From the NCBI GenBank assembly GCA_002269645.1, contig NIVC01003869.1, forward strand, positions 1 to 64,000: a stretch of 64,000 bases of DNA, given 5' to 3'. The stretch is from Macrostomum lignano. Lineage: Eukaryota. Positions within the stretch are counted from its first letter, which is position 1. Each line of letters starts with the position of its first letter. Of the stretch, positions 17,644 to 20,600 are shown piece after piece. The translations under genes and the position numbers were made by a program. A model generated the notes under the pieces. It saw only the letters and a list, made by a program, of their open reading frames with translations, had not been told where the DNA came from and made no database searches.

Positions 17644-20600
17644 ATGCTATCCGCCAAGAGTTTCACACGGCGTCGTCCACCAGCTGAACCGCCAGCGACC
17701 CCGTTGCAGATGCGGCAGCTCGCTGATCAGAAAAGTGCACCGTCCGCTGATGCTGAAGACGACCGCGGCGTTCCGACTGGCGACGACCGCGAAGCTCCAA
17801 CTGGCGGAGCCTTGACAGAGCGGCAGCTTCGCAGCCTCAGCTTCCAGGAGCTGCTGGAGCTCTGGCCCGATCCGCAGCGGGAGCTGCAGCTGCGGCTGGA
17901 TGATGTCGGAGGCGGAGAGCTGCTGAGCTGTCGGCTGCTGCACGCAGCGGTAGCAGCGGACAATCGGGACGGAGTTCGAGGCCTGCTGGAGATGGCGCCG
18001 GGCCTGGCTGAGCTGAGCAACTCCGTGAGGCTGCGGTGGGGTGACGGGTGGAGTGACGGGTGGATCGAATGATGGGTGGAGTGACGGGCGGATCGAATGA
18101 CGGGTGGAGTGACGGGTGAAGTGACGGGTGGAGTGACGGGTGGAGTGACAAGTGGAGTGACGGGTGTAGTGATGTGTGAAGTGATTGCCCCATTGAAAAC
18201 GAGGGTTAATATTGGGGGTTAATTTACCAATAGTCTAATGAAACAAATTAACTAATTATAACTAATAATGAATAATGTTACTTGACGTTACTTGACTTTA
18301 CGGAGCGTAAATTTTCGTTAATTTACGAGTTTGTTTAACCGAAATTAACCTACAAAGTGTCTGTGAATAATTAGCGTAAATTCGCTTTTTCGAAAGTTAA
18401 ACTGCGGTAAACTAACCAACCAAAAGTTACTTTTCGTTTATTTACTTTCAAGTTTAACCCTCGTTTTCAACGGGTGGTGTGGAGTGACGGGTGGAGTGAC
18501 GGGTGGAGTGACGGGTGGAGTGATGGGTAGAGTGACGGGTGGAGTGACGGGTGGATCGAGTGACGGGTGGAGTGACATGTGGAGTGACGGGTGGGGTAAC
18601 GGGTGGAGTGACATTTGAAGCGGCAATTGTAGTGACAGGTGGAGTGATAGGTAGAGTGAAATGTGGAGTGACATGTGGAGTGACATGCGGAGCGACAAGT
18701 ACATGTATAGTGCCAGGTGGAGTGATGAGTGGAGTGACGGACGGAGTGACGAGTGGAGTGATGAGTGGTTGGTAAATTGATGTTAAATTAACCAACCAAA
18801 AGTTACTTTCGTTTATTTACTTTCAAGTTTAACCCTCGTTTTCAACGGGTGGTGTGGAGTGACGGGTGGAGTACAGGTAGAGTGACAGAAAGAGTGACGG
18901 GTGGGTGCCAGTCCAGCTGCCGCCCCATCAGCTTCTGCCCTCCGCCCGCCTCCCTCAGCGCCGCGAGCTGCCGATCCACGTGGCCTGCCGGCTCAACCGC
19001 CCGCTTCCCGCGGCGCTGCTGCTGCCGGCGATGTCCCGGGAGGCCGTCAACTCGCTGGACGGCCGTGGCCGGGCGCCGCTGCACTGGGCGGTCGAGCTCG
19101 GGGAGGCCGACTGCCTGGCCGAGCTGCTGGTCAGCGACCTCTGCGACCTGGCGCTGCCGGACTCGGTGAGAGCCCTGAGGAATCTCTGCTTCTAGGGGCA
19201 GACCGGAAGTTGGGAGAGGCAGTCAAGCACTTACCGGAAGTGGGGAGAGACAGCATTGATCAGACCGGAAGTGGGGAGAGGCAGTCAAACGCAGACCGGA
19301 AGCAAATCCCAAATCCCAGTCGGGCAGGTCGGCCCTGGACTGCGCCAGAGAGGCGGGTCCGAAGGCTCGCGCCTGCCTGCGGCTGCTGGAGTCCGCGGCC
19401 TTGGCGGCGTCCGCCCTGGCGCCGCTGCGGCTGCGCCGATTGGAGCCGGCGAGCAGCCACGGGTGCCGCGACGGCGAGCCGCGCGCCTGGGGAGCCGCCT
19501 GCGACTCCGCGCTGCTGGCCAACAACTGCTTTGGGGAGGTGGAGTTTCCCGGCCTGGGAAACACCGCTCAGGTGAGTGCCTGTTGCAAGATTCATTGCTG
19601 TTGCTATAGCAACAAGTTTCATTGCTGTTGCTATGGAAACACTTTCCATTGCTGTTTCTATGGAAACACTTTTCAGTGCTGTTGCTATGGAAACACTTTT
19701 CAGTTCTGTTGCTATGGAAACACTTTTCATTTTTTATGTTATGGCAACACTTTCCATTGCTGTTGCTCTGGAAACACCTTTCATTTATGTTGCTATGGCA
19801 ACAATTTTACCATAACAATTAGCAACTTTTTCTATAGTGACACCGCTCATGTAAATTTTCGTTGCTATGGAAACACTTCTTATGTCAGTTACCATGGTAG
19901 CACGTCGTGGCATAACTGTTGTTACGGTAACACCTGCTCATTCTCGTTGCTATGGCAACCCTTCTAAGATGAGAGTTTCTGTTGCCATTGCCACTCCTCC
20001 CAGGTGATTGCCTGTTAGTGTGGTATCCCTACTCGGAGTACCTGTCACCATGGCAACAACATCCGCCCTCCCCACTCCCCAGTTCTGCCGCGTGGCCCAG
20101 ACCTGCTCAGACGCAGACATTTCGCAGTTGCTGCTTGGCTGCTGGGCCCTCAGCAGGCCCTCCCTGGTGCTCAGCGTGCACGGCAGCAACTGCGACAAAG
20201 CCTCCTTCAAGGCGGCTTGGCAGAAGGGCCTGTGGAAGACGGCAGCTGGCTCAGGTGAGCTTCATCGGGTGCTCTCGCTAATTATGGAGCTAATTATGCA
20301 TAAATTATGCTAATGAACCGCAGGTGCCTGGATCGTCACCGACTGCTGCTCCGGTCTGGCCAGAAAAACCGGCCAGGCGGCCAGGGACTTCTGCGACGCC
20401 TATGGCCCGGACAGTGTCCGAGCGATTGGGGTTTGCAGCTGGGGGCGCTCGGCCGGCCGGGAGTGTCTTCGATCTGAGAGCTTCGCTGTAAGCTGCGCTG
20501 TGATTGGCTGAGCTGTGATTGACTGGGCTGTGATTGGCTGCGCTGTGATTGGCTGCGCTGTGATTGGCTGGGCTGCGATTGGCTTAGCTGTGATTGGCTG

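Follow-up and report, generated by a model that had tools for sequence, protein, structure and literature searches.

The 64,000-nucleotide window analysed here (positions 1 to 64,000 of contig NIVC01003869.1, assembly GCA_002269645.1) from the flatworm Macrostomum lignano contains a gene that spans positions 17644–61681 of the plus strand and encodes a TRPM channel subunit with an N-terminal ankyrin domain. The 21-exon model of this gene, in which every intron is GT-AG and the last exon ends in a TGA stop, translates into a protein identical to PAA49471.1, a 1781-residue "hypothetical protein BOX15_Mlig003066g2" from M. lignano (the initial annotation of this DNA had given a length of 1797 residues, which yields to the 1781 residues of the public model that the locus matches). 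When exon 7 by itself was searched with HMMER against 1.84 billion representative proteins, the 98%-identical, 1781-residue BOX15_Mlig003066g1 of the same species was retrieved, and Mlig003066 is present as three copies (g1, g2 and g3) that are 97–99% identical to one another; within the window there is no second TRPM or ankyrin gene and no paralogous copy. We regard the identification of the locus as Mlig003066.g2, together with the gene model and the domain architecture, as close to certain. From the N-terminus onwards, the protein consists of a disordered tail, the ankyrin domain, a linker of ~30 residues, SLOG/MHR1-2, MHR3-4, the transmembrane segments S1–S6, the TRP helix, a helical, coiled-coil-like region and NUDT9H, so that the ankyrin array, the TRPM elements (SLOG, TRPM2-like domain, ion channel and TRP helix) and NUDT9H, whose combination had been proposed initially, do lie on one open reading frame.

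The ankyrin domain is encoded by the first three exons. Exon 1 (17644–18024) carries the start codon, a low-confidence and likely disordered tail of ~60 residues, capping helices and ankyrin repeat 1 (LLHAAVAADNRDGVRGLLE, residues ~90–122). Exon 2 (18959–19165; 69 residues, phase 0-0) holds repeats 2 and 3 (LPIHVACR... and GRAPLHWAVELGEADCLAELL), while repeat 4 straddles the exon 2/3 junction (LPDS/SGRSALDCARE, with the slash at the splice) and occupies the 5' part of exon 3 (19320–19415; SGRSALDCAREAGPKARACLRLLESAA). The initial annotation had recognised about four ankyrin-like repeats here, quoting peptides that indeed sit in the frames it gave (LLHAAVAADNRDGVRGLLEMAP in exon 1, LPIHVACRLNRP and DGRGRAPLHWAVELGEADCLAELL in exon 2, and NNCFGEVEFPG in exon 3), and Pfam, AlphaFold2 and Foldseek all bear the repeats out over residues ~90–228. 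Pfam Ank_2 scored 34.1 bits (E = 4e-8) on the 391-residue N-terminus, 37.7 bits (E = 3e-9) on a 170-residue segment and 33.3 bits on the full protein; all three lie above the curated cut-off of 27.3 bits, and the absence of any ankyrin match, which the initial annotation had named as fatal to its proposal, is therefore not what was found. On the same 170-residue segment the single-repeat Pfam Ank model reached 24.7 bits against a cut-off of 21.1, and a phmmer search with consensus ankyrin sequence aligned three consecutive repeats at residues 131–211 (E = 1e-8).

Structure prediction gave the same picture. An AlphaFold2 model of residues 56–262, built from an alignment of seven homologous flatworm sequences, had a predicted template modelling score (pTM) of 0.74 and a predicted local distance difference test (pLDDT) of 88–94 over four helix-turn-helix pairs, which begin at model residues 39, 77, 112 and 146 and thus recur with a period of ~35 residues (a prediction from exon 1 alone, with a pLDDT of 61, was uninformative). 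When this model was submitted to Foldseek, designed ankyrin proteins and DARPins made up nearly all of the top 50 matches in the Protein Data Bank (PDB), the top ones having a probability of 1.00; an example is the four-repeat consensus protein '4ANK' (1n0r), which superimposes with a TM-score of 0.86 and a root-mean-square deviation of 1.7 Å. Exons 1–3 hence encode a genuine four-repeat ankyrin domain. Exon 2, with its two repeats, is 100% identical across the three M. lignano copies, whereas the flanking linkers differ.

The passage from the ankyrin domain to the channel proper takes place inside a single exon. The 3' part of exon 3 (19416–19571) continues from repeat 4 through the ~30-residue linker into the start of TRPM SLOG/MHR1 (LLANNCFGEVEFPGLGNTAQ) as one uninterrupted open frame, just as the initial annotation had stated, and the junctions of exons 1–3 are all GT-AG and in phase 0. 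In its own frame, the start codon of exon 1 is preceded by a stop at 17584–17586, with no other ATG in between. Because exons 3–6 contain no in-frame methionine, translation must start upstream of SLOG, and this, together with the use of the same ATG by the public transcript-derived model, makes transcripts that begin inside exon 3 unlikely. The M. lignano annotation was built from genome-guided RNA-seq transcript assemblies and TransDecoder open reading frames (ORFs) (PMC5730564), so that the fused ankyrin–TRPM reading frame is also a transcript-level model. In the chosen frame, the GC content at third codon positions (GC3) is 0.67 in exon 1, 0.97 in exon 2, 0.89 in exon 3 and 0.75–0.84 in exons 4–7; the short exons are GC-rich, with GC3 of up to 0.97, compared with an overall GC content of 0.31–0.59 in the introns. 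None of the 21 exons is disrupted: the splice sites are canonical and the frame stays free of stops across 1781 codons. Immediately ahead of the gene, a TATAAA sequence at 17582–17587, which is a consensus match only, lies 57 nucleotides upstream of the start codon and overlaps the in-frame stop, and a 74-codon overlapping ORF, part of a frame-1 open stretch (17489–17812), starts from an ATG at 17591 that is out of frame.

Beyond this junction the protein follows the plan of TRPM2. Exons 4–7 (20083–20254, 20324–20487, 20691–20949 and 21820–22499) encode SLOG/MHR1-2 and the start of MHR3, and Pfam LSDAT_euk ('SLOG in TRPM') matches residues 279–539 with 82.7 bits against a cut-off of 25.7. MHR3-4, which corresponds to the Pfam TRPM2-like domain (PF25508; 148.6 bits, cut-off 27), continues through exons 8–10 (23303–23356, 23444–23748 and 25748–25976). 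The block comprising pre-S1, S1–S6, the pore and the TRP helix is contributed by exons 11–13 (31899–32143, 32679–32778 and 33535–33978) and 14–16 (35123–35318, 35588–35717 and 36388–36593), with a Pfam Ion_trans match of 40.4 bits, above its cut-off. Exon 17 (36779–37110) encodes the C-terminal helical region, in which a heptad-like stretch resembles a coiled coil by eye only and Pfam TRPM_tetra has no match at E ≤ 0.01.

Among solved structures, the best match is TRPM2 of Nematostella (nvTRPM2; 6co7, E = 9e-104), followed by human TRPM2 (6mix/6puo; E = 2e-89) and then by TRPM5, TRPM3, TRPM4 and TRPM8; the nearest named non-flatworm matches in the databases are likewise TRPM2 or TRPM2-like. 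The alignment to the TRPM2 structures starts at residues 245–261, just upstream of LLANNCFGEVEFPGLGNTAQ. Close inspection of the transmembrane block, which aligns with nvTRPM2 at 170.8 bits, reveals that the residues of the Ca2+ site are kept: LVLEELRQ in S2 and TWNIFD in S3 align with ILIEEIRQ and TWNFVD of nvTRPM2, conserving the Glu/Gln pair of S2 and the Asn/Asp pair of S3. The pore sequence YFQIYGEMNMD, with its YGE motif, resembles YWQMYGELFLD of nvTRPM2, the pore Glu aligning with that of the Nematostella channel, and the TRP helix (WSLQRYLLMRE) is found at residue 1287.

The C-terminal NUDT9H domain is split between exons 20 and 21 by the satellite-filled last intron. A linker and the N-terminal two thirds of the domain (GGLPLWGPNHCAVLAVTRWKRD) are encoded by exons 18–20 (37498–37755, 38213–38340 and 38425–38673), and the C-terminal third, with the TGA stop, by exon 21 (61327–61681). 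By phmmer, the C-terminus matches human NUDT9 (1q33; E = 2.2e-21) over residues 48–280 of that protein, nearly its whole length, and, in a search of the PDB, NUDT9H of nvTRPM2 (E = 9e-13); tblastn places NUDT9H matches on both sides of the intron (Pfam NUDIX was not detected on a partial C-terminal piece, the PDB search by phmmer being the one that did detect the domain). An intact Nudix box for ADP-ribose hydrolysis reads GX5EX7REUXEEXGU. The corresponding region here (PSFLVKHCSHRCSATCCNLANEL) is without a recognisable REx2EE, the confidence of the phmmer alignment being low at this point, and because these Nudix-box residues cannot be recognised the domain is probably non-catalytic. On the DNA, the Nudix-box region spans 38600–38673 and 61327–61400 (PSFLVKHCSHR/CSATCCNLANELKAWLSDRVES, the slash again marking the splice), and two related flatworm proteins (P0154 and P0006) read LPW at the position of AIPGG in NUDT9. 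The intron itself (38674–61326, 22.65 kb) consists almost wholly of a 42-bp satellite (TATAGGATAGGGGAGTTGAGGACCGTAGCTGAAGGACACTAT), of which 537 copies with 99% matches fill 22.5 kb (38682–61223).

The combination of ankyrin repeats, SLOG and NUDT9H recurs outside the three Mlig003066 copies, in a search of other taxa of the kind that the initial annotation had proposed. We screened the best 150 hits and their cluster members with a consensus-ankyrin phmmer search and with Pfam scans of the N-termini, the latter covering all hits that have 190 or more residues ahead of SLOG. In addition to Mlig003066 g2 itself (Ank_2 33–38 bits) and g1 and g3 (matched by consensus-ankyrin phmmer), Ank_2 was detected in the M. 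lignano paralogue Mlig025325g2 (37% identical; 45.6 bits), in KAG5447154 of the liver fluke Clonorchis sinensis (38.4 bits, and 31.1 bits by consensus-ankyrin phmmer) and in KAK4474030 of the blood fluke Schistosoma mekongi (40.0 bits); KER24789 of the liver fluke Opisthorchis viverrini is a near-identical orthologue of KAG5447154, for which Ank_2 is not reported separately. The repeats of Macrostomum and the flukes match position by position. Among the 22 TRPM hits of this set with at least 190 residues before SLOG, ankyrin repeats occur in flatworm proteins only: no ankyrin match was obtained in 17 long-N-terminus proteins from outside the flatworms (mollusc, annelid, hemichordate, cnidarian and others), nor in the fluke protein KAG5451156 of Clonorchis. 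Mlig025325 (P0154) and the fluke orthologues still have, between their ankyrin repeats and SLOG, a Cys-rich CxC...H segment. An older, 836-residue M. lignano model (P0002, UniRef A0A1I8FQZ6), which lies outside the window, has the same junction between repeat 4 and SLOG; it diverges into low-complexity sequence further on and is therefore probably a wrongly spliced model from the same gene family.

To place these proteins, a neighbour-joining tree was calculated for 54 proteins (1027 columns, 100 bootstraps, midpoint-rooted). Every ankyrin-bearing protein falls into one flatworm-only clade with a bootstrap of 99/100, which also contains an N-terminally truncated model from S. japonicum. The sister of this ankyrin clade is a flatworm clade without ankyrin repeats, made up of Mlig001812 and fluke proteins of 2100–2300 residues; the label 'TRPM_PZQ-like' that this sister clade had received was withdrawn, its fluke members having Glu rather than Asp in the TRP helix.

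The published view, as the initial annotation had it, is that TRPM channels do not carry ankyrin arrays, and this is indeed what Himmel et al. (2020; PMC7306681) report for both TRPM and TRPS; every other group-1 TRP family has ankyrin repeats at the N-terminus, and these authors infer that the repeats were lost before the TRPM–TRPS split. In a survey of abalone, too, TRPM is reported to be the group-1 family without ankyrin repeats (PMC12980990), and Morini et al. (2026; PMC13143021), in their account of domain gains and losses in TRPM, mention only divergent ankyrin-like elements inside MHR3/4. Platyhelminthes are named by neither Himmel et al. (PMC7306681) nor Morini et al. (PMC13143021), the sole 'flatworm' of the former being an acoel, and since neither of these large surveys sampled the phylum the domain history of the TRPM family is incomplete. 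In the pharmacology literature on flatworms, N-terminal ankyrin repeats are described in the text only for the SLOG-less TRPM_MCLZ (PMC10788528, PMC12861061 and PMC11731825). The 2024 review lists an 'ankyrin repeat domain' in a figure legend among the domains annotated in schistosome TRPM paralogues, and its text refers to two uncharacterised 'nudix subclade' paralogues (PMC11731825). The concern that the architecture might already be documented in this clade is thus borne out as far as sequences go, the hypothetical protein and its fluke orthologues having been deposited, but not as far as descriptions go, for no text describing a TRPM with ankyrin repeats, SLOG and NUDT9H was found; the architecture is on deposit and its annotation was probably made by machine. 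What had been called a non-canonical combination is, when set against the published ankyrin-free TRPM and TRPS, an undescribed variant, specific to one lineage, of a channel family that is already known: textbook and phylogenetic accounts hold both families to be ankyrin-free, and a flatworm clade of TRPM2-like channels carries a four-repeat domain before SLOG.

We consider that Mlig003066.g2 very probably encodes a TRPM2-like ('nudix subclade') cation channel subunit with an ankyrin module belonging to a flatworm clade. To judge from its sequence, it is likely to be a functional channel, which would assemble as a tetramer that is probably Ca2+-permeable and, like TRPM2, Ca2+-dependent. The ankyrin module would have been gained once, in an early flatworm, in front of the ancestral Cys-rich/SLOG N-terminus; a single gain of this kind is the most economical reading of the tree, and exon 2, symmetric in phase (0-0) and containing two repeats, is in keeping with exon shuffling. 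In such a channel, NUDT9H would probably act as a non-catalytic ligand or structural domain, and ligand gating need not copy that of TRPM2, given the altered SLOG loop and the lost Cys-rich segment discussed below. What the module might do is a far more tentative matter: projecting, as we would predict, from the peripheral MHR1/2 layer, it could provide either a partner protein or the NUDT9H or MHR domains of the channel itself with a surface for docking or regulation, and might tune ligand gating as the ankyrin domains of TRPA, TRPC, TRPN and TRPV channels do. It is also conceivable, though improbable, that the clade combining ankyrin repeats, SLOG and NUDT9H is an evolutionary intermediate that explains the architecture of TRPM_MCLZ (ankyrin repeats without SLOG), by one early-flatworm gain followed by loss of SLOG and Nudix; if so, the module would be a functional gating or partner-binding element common to a set of channels targeted by anthelmintics.

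Several points weigh against this interpretation. The transcript support for the fused frame comes by way of the published annotation. The tree is a simple neighbour-joining one, calculated without a TRPS reference and without a labelled TRPM_PZQ or TRPM_MCLZ reference, and the cestode member of the ankyrin clade (Anoplocephala) gave no significant ankyrin match. The Cys-rich CxC...H segment of ~30 residues has been lost in the Mlig003066 lineage (as judged by comparison of 19416–19505), the Gly-rich loop of SLOG reads HGSN as opposed to TGGA in TRPM2, and because of these two changes ligand binding may differ from that of TRPM2. Finally, when the seven TRPMs of S. mansoni were all expressed for testing, the five besides TRPM_PZQ and TRPM_MCLZ did not respond to praziquantel (PZQ) or meclonazepam, and no activator is known for them (PMC12861061).

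Three other explanations have to be weighed against the reading favoured here, and we judge all of them very unlikely. The one that fares best is that the N-terminal array was not gained at all but is a relic of an ankyrin-bearing group-1 TRP ancestor, kept in flatworms only, in which case the model that ankyrin repeats were lost before the TRPM–TRPS split would be overturned. Such a relic could be reconciled with the fact that all other group-1 TRP families carry ankyrin repeats at the N-terminus (PMC7306681) and with the midpoint-rooted tree, where both flatworm clades branch outside the remaining TRPM hits, but this basal position is likely an effect of long branches or of the midpoint rooting, the array sits upstream of the Cys-rich segment and SLOG, unlike the repeats of TRPA, TRPC and TRPV, and its absence from the sister flatworm clade and from all non-flatworm hits would require many independent losses. 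Less probable still is that the gene is a decaying duplicate, one of three near-identical copies from a recent genome duplication that has stayed intact by chance rather than under selection and in which the ankyrin domain has no function. The 97–99% identity of the copies, the lost Cys-rich segment and the degenerate Nudix box and SLOG Gly loop would all suit this scenario; decay is nevertheless hard to square with an intact set of exons and splice sites free of stops, with an exon 2 that is invariant in the three copies while the linkers around it differ, and with the retention of the architecture across the deep split between Macrostomum and flukes. The least credible is a chimeric gene model, in which the ankyrin exons would come from a separate upstream gene or from read-through and the true TRPM protein would start later: although StringTie/TACO can merge neighbouring genes, the annotation pipeline did merge some transcripts (PMC5730564) and the M. 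lignano genome, rich in repeats, is difficult to annotate, repeat 4 and the beginning of SLOG share one open frame in exon 3, exons 3–6 offer no in-frame ATG, the phase 0 junctions of exons 1/2 and 2/3 rebuild the consensus turns of the ankyrin fold, the same layout is seen in a 37%-identical paralogue and in independently annotated flukes, and the nearest upstream gene, which encodes a TOG/HEAT protein, ends ~5.5 kb away.

The interpretation that we favour, a TRPM2-like channel with an ankyrin module gained in flatworms, has some practical bearing. The clade includes orthologues from human liver and blood flukes, which are among the TRPM paralogues without a known activator, and the flatworm TRPM field names such paralogues as a priority after TRPM_PZQ and TRPM_MCLZ; the finding thereby bears on a group of candidate anthelmintic targets. 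Since Macrostomum is amenable to transgenesis and RNA interference, the role of the added module is directly testable.

The upstream neighbour, a TOG/HEAT-repeat gene that is CLASP-like by eye, has plus-strand exons at 483–947, 10236–10601 and 11513–12103; its Pfam matches (CEP104-like_TOG and HEAT) are below cut-off only, and the distance given above is measured from its end to the TRPM ATG. In intron 10 (25977–31898, 5.9 kb), two adjacent ORFs on the minus strand (27432–28538) resemble a nested antisense gene, or gene fragment, of the DEG/ENaC family (amiloride-sensitive sodium channel), with a Pfam ASC score of 28.4 bits on 27837–28538 against a cut-off of 23.6. Downstream of the TRPM gene, a plus-strand ORF at 62467–62862 looks by eye like the C-terminal tail of a reverse transcriptase from a non-long-terminal-repeat retrotransposon (...LQLAGHVIRAEAY...), without a Pfam match at E ≤ 0.01. 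Long tandem repeats with periods of 4–48 bp and as many as 162 copies are found in nearly every intron and intergenic stretch, a different one in each (for example 1759–4994, 8271–10111, 22512–23263, 23886–25687, 28624–29906, 34198–35001 and 37120–37464), which fits the ~15% simple and tandem repeat content reported for the M. lignano genome (PMC5730564).

Among characterised channels, Mlig003066.g2 is closest in plan to TRPM2 (nvTRPM2, 6co7; human, 6mix/6puo), with which it shares SLOG/MHR1-4, six transmembrane segments, the Ca2+-site residues of S2 and S3, the TRP helix and NUDT9H, as well as a pore of the YGE type with nvTRPM2 in particular. It differs from TRPM2 in ~230 extra N-terminal residues that form the four-repeat ankyrin domain, in the absence of the Cys-rich N-terminal segment, in the altered SLOG Gly loop and in a Nudix box whose catalytic residues are not recognisable. 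The flatworm praziquantel target TRPM_PZQ (Smp_246790) likewise combines SLOG with NUDT9H and belongs to the 'nudix subclade', according to PMC11731825, but, unlike Mlig003066.g2, has not been described as having an N-terminal ankyrin domain. The two also differ in the TRP helix, where the Glu of Mlig003066.g2 is E1297, that of the characterised Ml.TRPM_PZQ is E1495 and fluke TRPM_PZQ has Asp; this numbering rules out that Mlig003066.g2 is Ml.TRPM_PZQ itself, and of the M. lignano paralogues with a recognised motif (P0151, P0154, P0006 and P0161) none has the TRP-helix Glu at 1495. In S. mansoni, the ankyrin clade is probably represented by one of the paralogues that have yet to be deorphanised. 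With the meclonazepam target TRPM_MCLZ (Smp_333650) the protein shares N-terminal ankyrin repeats (PMC10788528, PMC12861061); TRPM_MCLZ, however, has neither SLOG/MHR1-2 nor Nudix, as stated in PMC11731825, and the presence of both SLOG/MHR1-2 and NUDT9H sets Mlig003066.g2 apart from the TRPM_MCLZ group. TRPS channels (ced-11-like, soromelastatin) resemble it in carrying SLOG and NUDT9H on a TRP channel but are reported to be ankyrin-free, and also to be without the Cys-rich region. TRPA, TRPC, TRPN and TRPV, for their part, share with Mlig003066.g2 a cytosolic N-terminal ankyrin domain on a six-transmembrane TRP channel and, unlike it, have no SLOG, MHR or NUDT9H; compared with theirs, the array of Mlig003066.g2 comprises just four repeats, and ~700 residues of MHR1-4 lie between it and the membrane domain.

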